Of a stretch of 64,000 nucleotides of DNA, positions 11,258-15,943 are shown one piece after another. The stretch is from sequence record MW822008.1, one strand, 5' to 3'. The notes beneath the pieces were generated by a model, which saw nothing but the letters and a program-made list of their open reading frames with translations, made no database searches and was not told the origin of the DNA. Every line of letters begins with the position of its first letter. The stretch's first letter is position 1. Both the position numbers and the translations under genes were made by a program.

Positions 11258-13405
11258 GTGCTAAACATTACACGTATATCAATGAGGAACTTCTTTTCAT
11301 TTGGCAATGCACCACAAGTAATTGATTTGTCTGGTGCTGATATATCGTTAGTTCTTGGTCAAAACAATGATGCAGTTATTGAAGGTGGTGATAGTTCCGG
11401 TCGCCGTAATGGTGTTGGTAAAAGTGCCATAATTCAAGGTTTAGTTTTTGGTTTGTTTGGAAAAAGTATTGGTAACGATATCAAAATTCCAAACTTAGTT
11501 AATAAAACTAATGCTAAAAACTGTGAAGTATCTGTTGAGTTCGAGAAAGATGGTGTACAATATCTCGTCGAGCGTGGGAGAAGTCCCACGTATTTCAACT
11601 TTATTACATTAGGTAAAGATAATAAGGTCGAAGATGAGTCAAGAGGGGAGAAGAAAGATACACAAGAAGATCTAAACGAGATTCTTGGGATTTCTCAACT
11701 ACTATTTGAACATATTGTAGTACTTAATGCTAACGTAGAGCCGTTTCTTGCATTATCATCACAGAAACAACGTGATATGATTGAGGAACTTCTGGGTATC
11801 ACACAATTAACAGAGAAAGCTGAACTATTAAAGGATATGTATAAAGATTCTAAACGTTTAGCTGAACAAGAAAAGTTCAAAATTGAAACTGTGGCTGCAA
11901 GTAATGAACGTATTCAAAAAAGTATTGAATCATTACAAGAACAAGCTAACCAATTTGAGATTGATAAAAATAATAGAGTATCTAAGTTGACTGAAGAATT
12001 GAATATCTACAAAACTTTAGACTTCAACGATCTCTATGATTTGGCAGAAGTGAAAGAGAAAGCTCTTATTCATAATGCTGCTCGTGATCAAATAGAAAGA
12101 CGTGTACAAGAGTTAGCTTTGAAGTATGATGCATATGACCGTGAACTGGCAACAGCAAAATTAGCATTAAATGTAAGTATTGATAAGCTAAAAACTATTG
12201 ATATCAGTACTGAATTAGAAAATCACAATGAGTTGGAGATATGGAAACAGTTGGAGGGTATTCTAAAAGAGAATAATAACCAAAAACGTTTCAAAGAACA
12301 AAAACTTAACGCATTAAAGGTGGCGTTAAATGGACATGATAGTTCTTTACGTGCTGAGGTGGACAAATTAGCAACAGTGGAGAGTAGTAAATGTCCACTT
12401 TGTATGTCCGAATTAGAACATAATGAACATACTTCGTCTATTAAAGATAAAATTCAAAATACTATTAATGAACTTCAATCTAAAATTGATAGTTCCACTT
12501 CTGAAATTGAAACATTACTTCAGGAAATTGATAGTATTGAGATTTTTGATATGCCACCTAAGCCTGTGACATTCTATTCTACACTAACTGAAGCACAAAT
12601 GCATGAGCATAAGCTTCAAGAACTTATTAAAAAGAGTGAAGAAGAGCAAATTAACATCTATGCTAATGAACTTATGTCATCATATGAAGAACTGAACGCA
12701 CATGTTCTTCAAGAAGTACCAGATACATTGAATAAATCTGAAGTAAAAGAGTTAGAAATGACTGTAACTTCATTATCACAGCAATTAGATCGTGAATTGA
12801 AAACTACTAACACATTTATTGGACAAATTAATACACTTACGACCGATTCATTAGTACCAATCGACTATAGTGACTATAATAACCTTGATAAGATGGCAAA
12901 TCACCAAGATTTCTTGGTTAAATTGTTGTTAAACAAGGATTCTTATGTCCGTAAGCGTATTATTGAACAAAACATTTCGTATCTGAATACACGTCTTCAA
13001 TATTACATTGATATGTGTGGTTCTGAACATAATGTTGTGTTCTTGAATGATTTGAGTGTAGAAATTGAGAAAAGTGGTCAGTACTTTGACTATAAACAGC
13101 TTAGTCGTGGTGAGCGTACAAGGGTAAACATTGCTTTATCTTGTGCTTTCCGTGATACATATGAGTCATTGTATCAAAGTATCAATATTCTTATCATTGA
13201 TGAGATGATTGACCAAGGTCTTGATTCAAGTGGTGTTCTTCGCGTGTGGTCTATCTTCCAAGATATGGCTGCTGTGCGTGGTAAGAATGTATATGCCATT
13301 TCTCACAGAGAAGAATTGCTTTCTAAGACTGAGAAAATCCTAAAAGTAGTTAAAGAGGATGGTTTCAGTACTGTTGAGTATACAACTCTTGATGATGTAT
13401 TCTAA
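11258..13405 (+). CDS. gp46: Recombination ATPase, gp46/SbcC/Rad50-like
   Basis: Walker A NGVGKS, zinc hook CPLC, signature LSRGE, Walker B IIDE, H-loop ISH. Confidence 0.93.
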   Translation: MLNITRISMRNFFSFGNAPQVIDLSGADISLVLGQNNDAVIEGGDSSGRRNGVGKSAIIQGLVFGLFGKSIGNDIKIPNLVNKTNAKNCEVSVEFEKDGVQYLVERGRSPTYFNFITLGKDNKVEDESRGEKKDTQEDLNEILGISQLLFEHIVVLNANVEPFLALSSQKQRDMIEELLGITQLTEKAELLKDMYKDSKRLAEQEKFKIETVAASNERIQKSIESLQEQANQFEIDKNNRVSKLTEELNIYKTLDFNDLYDLAEVKEKALIHNAARDQIERRVQELALKYDAYDRELATAKLALNVSIDKLKTIDISTELENHNELEIWKQLEGILKENNNQKRFKEQKLNALKVALNGHDSSLRAEVDKLATVESSKCPLCMSELEHNEHTSSIKDKIQNTINELQSKIDSSTSEIETLLQEIDSIEIFDMPPKPVTFYSTLTEAQMHEHKLQELIKKSEEEQINIYANELMSSYEELNAHVLQEVPDTLNKSEVKELEMTVTSLSQQLDRELKTTNTFIGQINTLTTDSLVPIDYSDYNNLDKMANHQDFLVKLLLNKDSYVRKRIIEQNISYLNTRLQYYIDMCGSEHNVVFLNDLSVEIEKSGQYFDYKQLSRGERTRVNIALSCAFRDTYESLYQSINILIIDEMIDQGLDSSGVLRVWSIFQDMAAVRGKNVYAISHREELLSKTEKILKVVKEDGFSTVEYTTLDDVF

Positions 13406-13413
13406 TTAAAAGG

Positions 13414-13439
13414 AAAGGGAGCCTTAGCTCCCTTTTTTT
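13414..13439. terminator. Bidirectional terminator between convergent gp46 and EndoVII-like genes
   Basis: AAAGGGAGC-CTTA-GCTCCCTTTTTTT. Confidence 0.85.
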
Positions 13440-13915
13440 ATATCTACCATATTTAATTTGCCTTCCTTGATAAGCTTTCTGGCTTGCTTAACACGAGCAG
13501 CATTGTTTGCACCAGGGATAACACCTAACTCTTCCAGTATTGCATTCTGTTGTCCTGCTGGGAGCCTTTTAAACTTATTCGTATCGATTGTTAGTGCAGT
13601 GTGATGTATAACTTGCTCATCTTCAGGAATGCTGTTATTACGCTCCAGATAATCCGCAAGATTTCGTAGTACCTCGTATAAGGGTTTATCGGTTAAGTGC
13701 TTCATATAGCGATTAAAGCTGTTCTGTACTTTACCTTCCCATGCGTTCACTTCGTTCTGGAGAACTTCACGACAGTGTTGATTCTCGAAGTGATAGTGAT
13801 CAAGTACTGGCTTAGTTATTGGTTCCTTAATTATAGGATCAATTCCTTTTTGCTTCTTTAGTAATTCATTTCGATAGTTTGCAGCTTCTTTACTATCTTT
13901 TAATCTTTTCTTCAT
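13424..13915 (-). CDS. Endonuclease VII (gp49)-like Holliday junction resolvase
   Basis: VLDHYH...CREVL...NAWEGKV matches EndoVII LDHDH..RGLL..N..EG core; ATAAATA at 13946-13952 (minus). Confidence 0.75.
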   Translation of the reverse strand: MKKRLKDSKEAANYRNELLKKQKGIDPIIKEPITKPVLDHYHFENQHCREVLQNEVNAWEGKVQNSFNRYMKHLTDKPLYEVLRNLADYLERNNSIPEDEQVIHHTALTIDTNKFKRLPAGQQNAILEELGVIPGANNAARVKQARKLIKEGKLNMVDIKKGS

Positions 13916-14008
13916 AAATCCCCACTAAACTAATTCTTATCAAAATATTTATGCGTTACTTCAATGTTCAAGAATTATGTACTTTTTATAAATTTTTTAT
14001 CATAATAG

Positions 14009-14037
14009 TGAGACACTTTTGAATTTGGTGCTATAAT
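14009..14037 (+). promoter_or_regulatory. Phage-specific promoter TGAGACA-N16-TATAAT driving an ORF-less transcript
   Basis: Match to the repeated motif, with extended -10 TG. Confidence 0.8.
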
Positions 14038-14043
14038 GTTAAT

Positions 14044-14499
14044 TGTAGTGATGACAATCCTGTTGAATGCAGAAATGCATATAAATTAGAACCTGATCCT
14101 ATCGAAAATGTAGATGGCAGATGAGCAGTTCAACAGTGCGATGAGCAGAAGAAACCCGTTAGATGTGGGCATAGTTTGAACCCCTCACGGCGACACGGCT
14201 CAATAAAGAACTCCGATAAGCATACAGAGAGTTCCTCGATAGATGTATAAGGATCGCACCTTACCAGATTTGCTAAGGGAGTTTATTAAGTGATTTAATA
14301 AACAGCCTGAAGTTTGATTGTATAGACTTTCAGGTGAGTGTCAGGATGATTAAGACTGACGACCGTTGCACATGACTGCGATAGAGAGAAACAGAGCAAC
14401 CCGCTTTCGTTCTTAATGAATTTTAAGAAATTCGCAATACAATAAATGCTGAAACCATCAGCGTCAAGAATTAAGAGACTTAATTGTCTCTTTTTTATT
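14044..14499 (+). ncRNA. Candidate large structured ncRNA (~450 nt), unclassified
   Basis: Bounded by promoter and terminator, no plus-strand ORF in the track, many helices, GAAA tetraloop, crossing long-range pairings. Confidence 0.65.
14473..14499 (+). terminator. Rho-independent terminator ending the candidate ncRNA
   Basis: AAGAGAC-TTAATT-GTCTCTT followed by TTTTATT. Confidence 0.75.
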
Positions 14500-14502
14500 G
14501 TC

Positions 14503-14701
14503 TTCATTCCCCTGCGGGGGGATGAAAATGTCTTCAACAAATCCCGTCAAGTATTAAATCTTTTAAAGTTCTTTATAATTAATTATAAGAAATGAATATG
14601 AGTTACGTAGTAACGAATATTCTTCAGCTAACGAATGAAATGAGTTAGATGAGTTCACTATAAAATAATTAATTCCTTTCATAATTCAATTCAATCAATT
14701 C
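14503..14701. repeat. AT-rich cluster of inverted repeats between convergent terminators
   Basis: Hairpin 14503-14526, perfect 16-bp palindrome TTATAATTAATTATAA 14573-14588, GTTAC-GTA-GTAAC 14602-14614, TAACGAAT twice. Confidence 0.7.
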
Positions 14702-14715
14702 TGTAGTTTAAAACC

Positions 14716-14741
14716 AAAAAAAACCAGCAACAATGTGCTGG
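14716..14741 (-). terminator. Rho-independent terminator
   Basis: Minus strand CCAGCA-CATTGT-TGCTGG then T8. Confidence 0.85.
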
Positions 14742-14752
14742 CTCCTTGTGAG

Positions 14753-14962
14753 TTAGTGCTTCTCGTTTTGTTTTTTAATTTTCTTATTAAAAGACTTAAC
14801 TAATAAGTCTCTATCAATTAGTGGCATATTAAGTAGTGTTCCGTAATCAACACTTTCCATATAAACAGAACACTCCATTAATGCAGTTTTAATATCTGAC
14901 TTATTCAACTCAAATTCCTTAAGTACTTCTTGTATTTCTTCAGGAGATGAGTGGAGAAGCAT
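14753..14962 (-). CDS. Small hypothetical protein, probable baseplate hub assembly partner
   Basis: Coupled to gp26-like gene (stop/start overlap); MPLIDRDLLVK motif. Confidence 0.6.
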   Translation of the reverse strand: MLLHSSPEEIQEVLKEFELNKSDIKTALMECSVYMESVDYGTLLNMPLIDRDLLVKSFNKKIKKQNEKH

Positions 14963-15798
14963 TATGCGAAAAAATGACTTGGGTCATATTTCAGTCCATT
15001 AATTTCCCATTGATGATTACAGTCACTGCATTCAACTTCCATAGTATGGGAAACACCAATTTCAAGTACTTCATCCATTTTTTCACGAATTATTTTAAGT
15101 GTTCCTTTGGACTGCTGACCTAGCCATTCAGAAATGAATTCATTTTCAGTTACTTCATCACCTTCAGGTGTAATTACCTTAGCAATAACTCCTGCGATCA
15201 TATCAAAGTTGAGTTGTGCCATACTTTCAAATACTTCACCAAACACTTTAACTTTTTCTTCCTGCTCCATTTCGGCAGTTTCAAGGAATTTAGTTTTTTG
15301 TTGTTCTGTAAACATTCTTTCTGCGAAGTTAGAATATTCCTTCCAAGTAAGTGGTCTAAACTCTAAACTTAGTCCATTATCCAATTGTACAGTAGGAACT
15401 TCACTGAAAGTTTGTGCTGTTTCTAGTAGATATGATAAGCTACGCTCAAAACGACCTTCTTTGTTACATTCAGGGCATGTCACATTAATATCATATGATT
15501 CTTCTTTAGAAGCTACTTTAATAGCGATAAGTAGTTGCTCTACGTCATTTACATAAAGTTCATCTGCATCAAGTACGTTAGGTACGCAGTTTTCAATAAC
15601 ACGAGCAATTGCATCACCATTTAGAAGCATATCTGGTGTATTGAGTGTCATTTCATCACGTGCACTACGAGCACAAATGCCACATTTGATACCTTTAGAG
15701 CCAAGAACTCCTTCTTTATAAGGAATCACGCCATTTGTGACCAATTTTGTACCAAGTTCTTCAATTTTAGTATACTTAGCTAGTGGGTTCATTGCCAT
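14962..15798 (-). CDS. Baseplate hub assembly protein, T4 gp26-like
   Basis: SARDEMTLNTPDMLLNGDAI..VIENC, DVEQLLIAIKVAS, CPEC and CSDC; start at 15798 after GGAG; late motif 15834-15840. Confidence 0.75.
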   Translation of the reverse strand: MAMNPLAKYTKIEELGTKLVTNGVIPYKEGVLGSKGIKCGICARSARDEMTLNTPDMLLNGDAIARVIENCVPNVLDADELYVNDVEQLLIAIKVASKEESYDINVTCPECNKEGRFERSLSYLLETAQTFSEVPTVQLDNGLSLEFRPLTWKEYSNFAERMFTEQQKTKFLETAEMEQEEKVKVFGEVFESMAQLNFDMIAGVIAKVITPEGDEVTENEFISEWLGQQSKGTLKIIREKMDEVLEIGVSHTMEVECSDCNHQWEINGLKYDPSHFFA

Positions 15799-15943
15799 TT
15801 TATTAAATCTCCATGTAATAAATGTCTTTGTAGTATTTATTACCAAAAAATGGGACAAATTGGACAAATGTTATAGATGGGTCTTTTTTATTCGTTATAG
15901 ATTCATAAATATTTCTATAATACATCTATTAAAAGGGAATGTT

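Follow-up and report, generated by a model that had tools for sequence, protein, structure and literature searches.

A stand-alone structured RNA family of RaK2-like jumbo phages with copies in enterobacterial chromosomal islands

The 64,000-nucleotide stretch of sequence record MW822008.1 analysed here (hereafter the window) comes from a jumbo phage of the genus Asteriusvirus, and its plus strand carries, at about positions 14009–14650, one of four paralogous genes for a stand-alone noncoding RNA (ncRNA). The RNA unit consists, in order, of a phage-class promoter, a core of about 425 nucleotides (nt), an intrinsic terminator and further conserved 3′ hairpins, and it encodes no protein. That it represents a family of structured-RNA genes is close to certain. 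The original prediction, made from the letters of the window, had placed at 14044–14499 a structured phage RNA not described before, equipped with a promoter and a terminator of its own, and this proposal is well supported by covariation on 41 homologues, by the conserved signals and by the lack of an Rfam match. The predicted extent is right for the core and the terminator, but the conserved unit continues past the terminator, beyond the predicted end at 14499, to about 14650; the multi-copy nature of the RNA, the part of the unit beyond the terminator and the homologues in chromosomal islands did not figure in the prediction.

Folding of the window copy alone gives a minimum free energy z-score of −2.4 relative to shuffled sequences, equal for both strands. 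Since this is just mildly better than the shuffles, the window sequence by itself proves no structure, and the comparative evidence is decisive. The structure model was built on 41 copies from phages, metagenomes and Escherichia coli, mutually less than 97% identical and aligned with MAFFT (alignment A3), and comprises 15 helices with 83 core and terminator pairs; the outer part of P8, P4b and P7 stand outside the fixed-column scoring because of register shifts in the alignment. Two kinds of control were used, 500 shuffles and versions of the model with the 3′ partners slid by 1–3 columns. First, 94.7% of the cells are paired in the model, compared with 81.1% in the shuffles, none of which scored as high, and 38–44% in the slid versions. 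Next, 50 of the 83 pairs have changed on both sides (shuffled 34, slid 14–18). Finally, the covariation score is 0.385, against 0.137 for the shuffled and 0.04–0.08 for the slid controls. The helices P3, P10, P11 and PK are paired in 100% of the 41 copies. The sequence strings quoted in the original prediction are found where it had put them, and eight of its helices hold on the 41 copies, namely P1, P1a (the GAAA hairpin), P5 (GAACTC/GAGTTC), P7, P8, P9 (GTCAG/CTGAC), P12 and the terminator, whereas P2, Px, P3, P4, P6, P10, P11, PK, T3, T5 and T8 were absent from it. It had also suggested a cmscan search of Rfam and a comparison with relatives; the former returns no family match and the latter reveals compensatory changes.

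The first ~425 nt form 14 local helices, and at least five long-range Watson–Crick helices (P1/Px, T3, T5, T8 and PK) hold these together in a compact body. The tertiary helices were detected by an all-against-all scan for covarying column pairs and then formally scored. The 17 pairs scored separately (Px, T3, T5, T8 and a two-pair extension of P8) are 98% paired and 12 of them are compensatory, compared with 26–44% pairing in the slid controls; the scores come from the alignment that was also scanned to find the helices and are thus not an independent test. The pairs lie in consecutive antiparallel runs with several pair types each, far above the slid controls. A pseudoknot had been predicted from the crossing of long-range helices, and the RNA is indeed heavily pseudoknotted, albeit through five other long-range helices; the crossing itself is spurious because two of the three long-range helices behind it fail. 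The pairing of CTATCGA with TCGATAG, extended by GATC/GGATC, is formed in 64.2% of the cells compared with 63.3% in the shuffles, its 7-bp helix lacks any compensatory change, and the CTATCGA strand covaries instead with a partner inside P2. Likewise, the CCUUA of the predicted hairpin CCTTA/TAAGG at 14259–78 pairs with the upstream UAAGG at 14248–52, as the change of U14261 to C is accompanied by a change of A14250 to G while the downstream A stays unchanged.

From its 5′ end, the core, all on the plus strand, begins with P1 (CTGTTGAA/TTCAACAG, 14060–67/14129–36), where 7 of 8 pairs are compensatory, followed by the variable hairpin P1a (14068–79), which carries the GAAA loop and has covarying columns, and by P2 (14093–95/14118–20 plus 14098–103/14113–17; 7 of 8 pairs compensatory), a hairpin with the conserved loop GAAAAUGUA. 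In Px (14125–27/14137–39), the pair 14126–14138 is A-U, U-A or C-G and is canonical in 41 of 41 copies; as the loop of Px contains the 3′ strand of P1, the two helices constitute a loop–strand pseudoknot. P3 (14142–46/14198–202; 4 of 5 pairs compensatory) encloses P4 (14156–59/14187–90 and 14162–63/14185–86; 95.8% paired), and in the window copy the P4 arm has an additional apical pairing at 14167–69/14182–84; in one lineage the arm has a UUCG loop instead and in others it is lengthened (alignments A2 and A3). T3 connects the J4/3 internal loop to the J5/6 strand (14193–14246) through the pairs A14193–U14246, C14194–G14245 and A14195–U14244, which are 100% paired; among the 41 copies, 13 show a G-C to A-U change and 2 a U-A to C-G change. 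The P5 hairpin (14208–13/14229–34) is 98% paired with all 6 pairs compensatory, and P6 (14248–52/14259–63) shows compensatory A-U to G-C changes. In T5 (14219–22/14271–74), the loop of P5 pairs with the strand just 5′ of an invariant UAAGGGA, and the pair 14220–14273 occurs as G-C, A-U or U-A, again canonical in all 41.

In the 3′ part of the core, P7 (14281–303) is a variable hairpin with covarying base pairs, a conserved base and a varying length, P8 (14306–15/14324–34) has compensatory inner pairs, and P9 (14340–44/14356–60) is likewise supported by compensatory pairs. The P8 loop AUUGU (14317–21) pairs with an ACAAU 3′ of P10 (14439–43) to form T8, in which pairing reaches 99% and four of the five pairs have compensatory changes, such as the U-A to C-G exchange seen in 17 of the 41 copies. 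In PK, a GUUGC (14365–69) pairs with a GCAAC inside the P11 loop (14396–400), with two compensatory pairs; P10 (14377–81/14432–36) has three such pairs and P11 (14384–88/14404–08) two. The hairpin P12 (14410–16/14423–29) is supported on the 41 copies. P13 (14451–54/14462–65), with a family consensus GAYG/CGUC, is weakened in the window copy, which can form 14448–52/14458–62 instead; the latter is the predicted GCTGA/TCAGC pairing, which is specific to the window copy and 48.7% paired across the family. A pairing of GGGA at 14277–80 with UCYC at 14542–45 was considered and excluded, as it shows G-C to G-U variation alone together with five A·C mismatches. The peripheral arms vary as they do in classical structured RNAs, being replaced by a tetraloop or expanded, and the P7 and P12 of relatives take insertions of ~40 nt that share the conserved motif UACAAUAUAGAUCCGUC (A2, A3). 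The optional ~40-nt hairpin, which has a conserved loop UACAAnAnAG(A/U)U(C/G)CGUC, is found at these two sites in different paralogues (e.g. loci L008, L014 and L028) and may be a transposable structural or protein-binding module.

The strand of the folded molecule is evident from its mismatches. Across the helices of the 41 copies, 153 cells are G·U and 43 are A·C, and two wobbles are nearly fixed, the G·U 14386–14406 in 33 of 41 copies and the U·G 14508–14521 in 31 of 41; since G·U outnumbers A·C, the molecule has the sense of the plus strand, in agreement with its promoter and terminator. The coding potential is negligible. In accord with the predicted lack of a plus-strand open reading frame (ORF), the family alignment contains no ORF conserved in position or strand, the longest stop-free runs spanning 52–130 codons on varying strands; column variability (0.172/0.201/0.189) lacks a 3-periodicity and the gap runs are mostly not multiples of three, so that there is no coding signature. 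The ORFs that overlap the region are short and not conserved, such as an 81-amino-acid minus-strand ORF at 14295–14540. As had also been predicted, the region is richer in GC (0.41–0.43) than its flanks (0.26–0.31).

A promoter and a terminator had been predicted at either end of the core, and scans find both. The promoter, of a sigma-70 type, was located by a consensus scan at 14009–14037 (+) and consists of a −35-like TGAGACA (14009–15), a spacer and an extended −10 TGcTATAAT (14029–37), from which transcription should start at about 14044; as a hexamer, the −35-like element can be read as GTGAGA from 14008 or as GAGACA from 14010. The signal is conserved across the copies: the sequence TG[AG][AG]AC[AG], followed after 15–17 nt by TGnTATAAT, precedes nearly every member of the family, the copy at 146 kb of the 352-kb phage TH47 having no obvious promoter, and the island copies have the same promoter type arranged in tandem. 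Host sigma-70 alone could suffice for an extended −10 promoter. Within the window, the class TG[AG][AG]AC[AG]-N15-18-TATAAT has six sites, all on the plus strand, where a rough estimate gives a chance expectation of about 0.06; of the further sites (9302, 32325, 41222, 51247 and 57670), four are 40–100 nt upstream of plus-strand ORFs and one is at an ORF start, and these five provide a usable promoter map of this phage region. The promoter class of the RNA unit corresponds to a “divergent RpoD-like promoter” with a −35 TGAAACG that was reported from the phages CBB and GAP32, where it mostly precedes genes for DNA synthesis (PMC5259590). On the minus strand, promoter-like sites are present at 14467–14439 and 14344–14317, but the count for the region is at chance level (5 found, 6.2 expected), and other genera, which have CGTCAG at this box, do not preserve the TTGACG reading of the minus-strand site.

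The intrinsic terminator (14473–14496, +), identified by a terminator scan, has a stem at 14473–79/14486–92 followed by a U-run; the stem covaries, with 5 of 6 pairs compensatory, and it should end most transcripts. The region has more terminator-like sites than expected (6 versus 0.8). The terminator is found in about three quarters of the copies and is missing from two paralogue lineages, its columns being gapped in 10–11 of the 41 copies. In copies of these two lineages (L002 at ~870–915, L023, L035 and L038), a terminator-like hairpin with a U-run is instead present between the promoter and P1, i.e. at the 5′ end of the RNA.

Beyond the terminator, the P14 hairpin UUCAUUCCCC-UGCG-GGGGGAUGAA (14503–26, +) is almost invariant and 93% paired, and its U14508·G14521 wobble, noted above, is a signature of the RNA strand. 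Together with P14, a conserved box CAAAUCCCGUCA (14538–49, +), with the family form CAAAUCYCGUCA, makes up a post-terminator module, the motif of which occurs exactly four times in the TH47 genome, each time beside a copy. A tentative 3′ extension on the same strand (14593–14648) is composed of UGAAUAUGAG, a small hairpin at 14602–14, CGAAUAUUCUUCAG and a hairpin CUAAC...GUUAG at 14628–48, which, judged by eye only, can be recognized as diverged equivalents of the elements of other genera. In those genera, an AU-rich spacer comes after the box, then UGAAUUGAG and a variable hairpin whose loop is of the GAACGAAGUGA type, and finally CGAAAAUUCUUUGA-hairpin-GGCAAAU. The modules are seen in 21 copies, in which the stems of the last hairpin covary (UUUG/CAAA to UUAG/CUAA), and in all loci (about 250 kb) the motif TCTTTGAC..GGCAAAT is found exclusively downstream of the RNA. 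Further on, a bidirectional terminator (14718–14759), detected by a scan on both strands and shared with convergent minus-strand genes, is likely to end any read-through, long-form transcript; the syntenic copies of other genera have the same arrangement. The 3′ elements would imply either substantial read-through to a long form of ~700 nt, with three further conserved hairpins, or an action at the level of the DNA.

The intergenic region harboring the unit (13916–14752) is 100% identical to that of the Escherichia phages BF17, EC.P1 and vB_Ec-M-J and 92–93% identical to that of 121Q and PBECO4 in blastn searches of phage genomes, all five being RaK2-like jumbo myoviruses of ~350 kb from the genus Asteriusvirus. 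The same search recovers matches in 71 records, all of them jumbo phages of ~310–386 kb with 4–5 matching places each, and with hosts from the genera Escherichia, Klebsiella, Salmonella, Erwinia, Serratia, Cronobacter, Pectobacterium, Yersinia and Xanthomonas. Pattern scans of IMG/VR added copies from 121Q, GAP32, CBB, Serratia phage BF, Yersinia phage fHe-Yen9-04 and uncultivated 350–370-kb contigs, and one metagenome pattern scan a further 41 copies. The four copies of TH47 lie near 49.4, 146.0, 262.0 and 345.5 kb and share one strand, which is the main coding strand; the other three are 72–80% identical to the window copy. In the tree of copies, lineages at ~174, ~258 and ~335 kb are common to BF, CBB, GAP32 and fHe-Yen9-04 and therefore represent old duplications, while the Asteriusvirus copies group together. 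Outside this range, no homologues were found among 72,556 plasmids, and of the 25 matches to the pattern CGACCGTTGC-N18-32-GAGCAACCCGC in 185,579 species-representative bacterial genomes, none was assigned to the family by nhmmer. The 25 were rejected, about a dozen representing one protein-coding stretch and the remainder being chance-like matches in GC-rich contigs. The coding stretch (~NPSATVAGLSEYLWKLEQPAH; loci L046, L047, L053–L056, L058, L059, L063, L065 and L066) is conserved in many GC-rich bacteria and matches the pattern by chance, which calls for caution in pattern scans of GC-rich genomes.

The genes around the copies are not conserved. In the window, the unit is preceded by a gp46/SbcC-like gene (11258–13405, +) and an endonuclease VII-like gene with a weak Pfam match (13424–13915, −), and is followed by two convergent ORFs (14753–15867, −), after which an almost unbroken array of plus-strand genes occupies the rest of the window from 15.7 kb onward. 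Searches with Pfam, PHROGs and PADLOC found no conserved neighbor protein around the four TH47 copies and the islands; the neighbors differ among copies and include, by Pfam, a sigma-70-like protein, a DUF7325 protein and weak HNH matches. By eye, the first residues of the downstream ORFs resemble those of an ADP-ribosylglycohydrolase, a DNA methyltransferase or homing endonucleases, or a downstream gene is lacking altogether. The latter applies to the copies that are syntenic with that of the window; in every genus these are followed by a convergent terminator instead of a gene, and the RNA of this lineage is therefore a product in its own right. A 236-amino-acid protein with Sigma70_r2 and Sigma70_r3 domains, a phage-encoded sigma-like protein, is located upstream of the 146-kb copy in TH47 (L003 49281–49991). 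ARAGORN identified four tRNAs in TH47, none close to the RNA copies.

A complete unit is also present in 2 of 5,426 complete E. coli genomes, those of the strains LR-29-1 (locus L120) and EEC_W5 (L121). The identity of the E. coli copy is 69.5% with that of the window and 80.6% with the ~174.5-kb copy of Serratia phage BF and Erwinia phage Eneladusvirus. It belongs to an island of ~10.8 kb between ffs, the gene for the signal recognition particle RNA, and ybaA (L120 7752–18646), which contains a tyrosine integrase gene split by IS3, the RNA unit, small ORFs without assignment, an mSLOG-DUF4326/DUF488/DuOB trio and a resolvase gene; the DUF488 and DuOB proteins of the trio match the PADLOC candidate system PDC-M45, and no replication or transfer genes are found among the ORFs searched. 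The layout is the same in the two strains, which come from Ecuador and Bangladesh. The divergent members from metagenomes are likewise chromosomal. Two of them have the RNA and small ORFs immediately behind the gene of a large serine recombinase, and their neighbors, judging from Pfam domains and gene order, read as enterobacterial housekeeping genes (secA, zapD, coaE, guaC and hofB/C at L100; modABC, modE, galE and galT at L106). No credible BLASTP match connects the proteins of the islands and the phage, apart from short ORFs inside the RNA region; as the complete island copies thus share no protein with the phage, the RNA needs no dedicated protein encoded beside it.

Among the islands themselves, the sole ORF that the E. 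coli island shares by BLASTP with the metagenome islands L100 and L112, though not with L074 or L106, encodes a protein of 118–131 amino acids (L100 377–772, L112 2311–2667, L120 14042–14398); it is ~69% identical between islands, has no Pfam, PHROGs or PADLOC match and is encoded 1.5–2.8 kb downstream of the RNA. Between the RNA unit of the E. coli island and the next gene, GATC-rich 13-nt sites (L120 12929–13022), ATTATCGATCGTT twice in tandem plus inverted copies, form a cluster that looks like an operator or iteron array from its sequence; no iterons or other repeats are shared among the island copies, and the ATTATCGATCGTT cluster is missing from the metagenome islands. According to a recent study and its commentary, Pseudomonas islands with an integrase, defense cargo and no transfer genes are transduced by a jumbo phage (PMC12595487; PMC12772148). 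With its integrase gene beside ffs and its candidate defense trio, the E. coli island might be a candidate for such an I55-type satellite, for which preferential packaging by a jumbo helper phage would be expected; a term search of PMC12595487 found no mention of a shared non-coding element.

In comparison with known RNAs, the family would constitute a new class, with a fold topology unlike that of RNase P, group I and II introns or tmRNA. Rfam 15, which includes GOLLD, ROOL, OLE, HEARO, RNase P, group I and II introns, tmRNA and riboswitches, gives no match in the whole window at gathering thresholds; in the permissive (E-value) mode, the copies of the window, the E. coli island and Serratia phage BF give sub-threshold chance matches to unrelated sRNA, snoRNA and lncRNA models only. 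ARAGORN detects no tRNA or tmRNA in the window. A literature search retrieved no description of the family. A 2023 catalogue lists about 10,000 candidate viral structured RNAs (PMC10690425) and may contain fragments of this family.

The closest parallels by phenomenology are ROOL and GOLLD, which often occur in phages or prophages, have no obligatory neighboring protein gene and are of no known function. These two and OLE are “ornate” large bacterial or phage-associated ncRNAs characterized by cryo-electron microscopy (PMC12286853), and like them the present RNA is several hundred nucleotides long, highly structured and stand-alone. It differs from them in that it matches none of their Rfam models in sequence or structure, is present in several copies per genome with its own architecture of promoter, terminator and 3′ hairpins, and is confined to RaK2-like jumbo phages of Gram-negative hosts and enterobacterial islands. 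With RNase P RNA and group I introns, the RNA has in common a size of ~400 nt, many helices joined by long-range pairings, variable peripheral hairpins, GNRA loops and invariant joining regions; in contrast, it matches no model at E ≤ 10 (951-nt search), has a different helix order and topology, is not inside a gene and occurs in 4–5 copies. An RNase P RNA can thereby be rejected, being normally encoded by a single-copy gene, and so can a group I intron, as the unit is stand-alone and intergenic with its own promoter and terminator and has neither a host gene nor flanking exons; the order P10–P11–PK also differs from the P3–P9 of the group I P3–P7 pseudoknot core, to which no covariance model gives a match. 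Resemblances to E. coli M1 RNA (short stretches), hammerhead cores, boxA/boxB and Shine–Dalgarno sequences are leads only; those to RNase P RNA and the hammerhead are unsupported by model searches, and no boxA/boxB match is claimed. PA5oct, a jumbo phage related to the RaK2 group, has two abundant ORF-less transcripts of ~240 and ~450 nt, ncRNA001 and ncRNA002, seen by RNA-seq from early infection (PMC7318152); nhmmer (--max) detects no homology to either.

The function of the RNA probably resides in its fold and not in the DNA or in mere transcription, and the best overall explanation, with a probability of roughly one half, would be that it works through this fold as a discrete trans-acting particle. 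This is suggested because selection preserves an intricate three-dimensional fold plus many invariant unpaired nucleotides, and tertiary conservation of this sort usually reflects such a particle; the window lineage without a downstream gene and the islands without an accompanying phage protein also favor it. The RNA could be a ribonucleoprotein scaffold or decoy, a ribozyme or a self-assembling “ornate” RNA, which would be co-expressed with the DNA-replication (middle) genes, their promoters being of the same type, and recognized by phage or host factors; the island copies might exploit or disturb the same recognition during infection. Several observations weigh against such a particle. Nothing in the data points to a partner protein, a substrate or a catalytic motif, and the RNA-seq support is by analogy alone, from the PA5oct ncRNAs that lack detectable homology. 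The three conserved hairpins and the linear box past the terminator are unexplained by a model in which the core RNA ends at the terminator, and in the two terminator-less lineages the RNA physically leads a downstream gene. Finally, the maintenance of old paralogue lineages at syntenic positions fits a cis role at least as well as a trans one. A trans-acting particle, as opposed to a cis-acting origin or leader, is proposed tentatively, at somewhat less than even odds.

The strongest of the rival explanations, although itself unlikely, is a replication-origin module, in which the middle-type promoter would drive an RNA that primes synthesis or opens the duplex, as in the R-loops of T4 oriF/oriG or the ColE1 RNA II, with the G-rich P14, the AU-rich spacer and the downstream hairpins acting on the RNA–DNA hybrid or the displaced strand. 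The islands would then carry one unit for the phage machinery to replicate them. Like such transcripts, the RNA would be promoter-driven, non-coding and a few hundred nucleotides long, in a replicon that, for T4-like phages, employs R-loop origins; its copies are dispersed, and it has its promoter class in common with replication genes. The 4–5 dispersed copies per ~350-kb genome (49, 146, 262 and 345 kb in TH47), the old paralogue lineages at syntenic positions, the conserved elements that extend past the terminator into an AU-rich stretch, and the single copies in integrase-bearing islands devoid of replication genes are all consistent with this role. T4 enzymes such as UvsW and RNase H act on RNA–DNA hybrids. 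Both are encoded by CBB-type phages, in which the promoter class is also that upstream of the DNA-synthesis genes (PMC5259590), and islands of this general kind are mobilized by a jumbo phage in Pseudomonas (PMC12595487). However, R-loop and primer RNAs are not known to require a fold of 425 nt in which five tertiary helices covary and dozens of unpaired bases are invariant, and the ColE1 and T4 origin RNAs lack a deeply conserved tertiary fold; here, moreover, an antisense regulator is not evident, the plasmids searched contain no homologue, no iterons are common to the copies, and the terminator is located upstream of the supposed unwinding region. GC skew was rejected as an indicator of an origin, as its cumulative sign change coincides with the window copy only, at the main strand switch, and reflects gene orientation.

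Less probable is a cis-acting leader, a giant promoter-proximal attenuator or processive antiterminator that would gate the polymerase past the terminator into long co-directional gene arrays, and in the islands control its entry into the cargo genes, with P14 and the CAAAUCUCGUCAG box acting like a nut site. Known antitermination RNAs are several-fold smaller, which counts against it. As with lambda nut and HK022 put, a promoter immediately precedes the element, and terminators and long gene arrays are located downstream of it; the hairpin plus linear box past its terminator resembles the boxB/boxA layout, which is a lead only. Co-directional ORFs follow the unit within 20–250 nt in most lineages and in all islands, all TH47 copies are on the main coding strand, the window copy heads a block of more than 48 kb of plus-strand genes, and in the two terminator-less lineages the RNA is an mRNA 5′ leader. 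In the window-syntenic lineage, unlike at nut and put, there is no downstream co-directional gene; a bidirectional terminator and two antisense genes follow in all genera, yet every module is kept. The downstream genes of the other copies are mutually unrelated, in contrast to the consistent downstream gene expected of a leader or riboswitch.

Far less likely is the remnant or the RNA of a mobile element, such as a recombinase or nuclease guide or scaffold, or an intron-like element, spread to several sites. The family is multi-copy, HNH-like and other homing-endonuclease-like ORFs are close to some copies and the island copies adjoin serine or tyrosine recombinase genes, but the phage copies adjoin none, their positions are syntenic across genera and not variable, terminal repeats are lacking, and Rfam gives no group I/II intron or omega-RNA match. 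A guide RNA was also among the roles listed by the original prediction, next to a ribozyme, a ribonucleoprotein scaffold and a ColE1-like primer, and no variable single-stranded, guide-like segment is seen in the family. Finally, small protein genes with incidental structure, for which the 2–4 “hypothetical proteins” annotated over the unit in several GenBank records (e.g. WPEC3, fEgEco12, E9.1, SHEFM2K and JP4) and the 81-amino-acid ORF could be quoted, can practically be dismissed, given the lack of a conserved ORF and of coding periodicity in substitutions and indels and the compensatory nature of the substitutions across helices; the annotations are probably spurious.

To our knowledge, large natural RNAs this dense in covariation-supported tertiary pairing are rare, and almost every earlier one (ribozymes, RNase P, tmRNA, ROOL/GOLLD/OLE) has opened a field or stays a major puzzle. 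The family is tractable, being carried by lytic coliphages such as Sharanji, the record of which gives E. coli K-12 MG1655 as the host. Its multi-copy syntenic distribution in 350-kb genomes bears on the long-distance organization of replication or transcription in jumbo T4-like phages, and the island copies, which share no protein with the phage, present a concrete candidate for a molecular link between jumbo phages and islands that may be mobilized by them or may block them. A term search of the recent work on jumbo-phage satellites (PMC12595487, PMC12772148) found no description of such an RNA link. It is conceivable, although doubtful, that the unit is an RNA machine of a new kind, compact, ~425 nt long, ribozyme-like or self-assembling and needed by RaK2-like jumbo phages at several genome positions, for example for the start of replication, which integrase-bearing defense islands of Enterobacteria have pirated as a “handle” to sense, hijack or block the jumbo phage; if true, this would be the first RNA-based helper–satellite or phage-defense interface.

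One difference between TH47 and the window concerns the upstream neighbors of the unit. In TH47, an additional ORF of 340 amino acids (L006 18092–19114), which may be a mobile insertion of the homing-endonuclease type, is situated between the endonuclease VII-like and gp46-like genes, the window counterpart of this interval being 13405–13424, and the longest gp46-like ORF listed has 542 amino acids in TH47 compared with 715 in the window.

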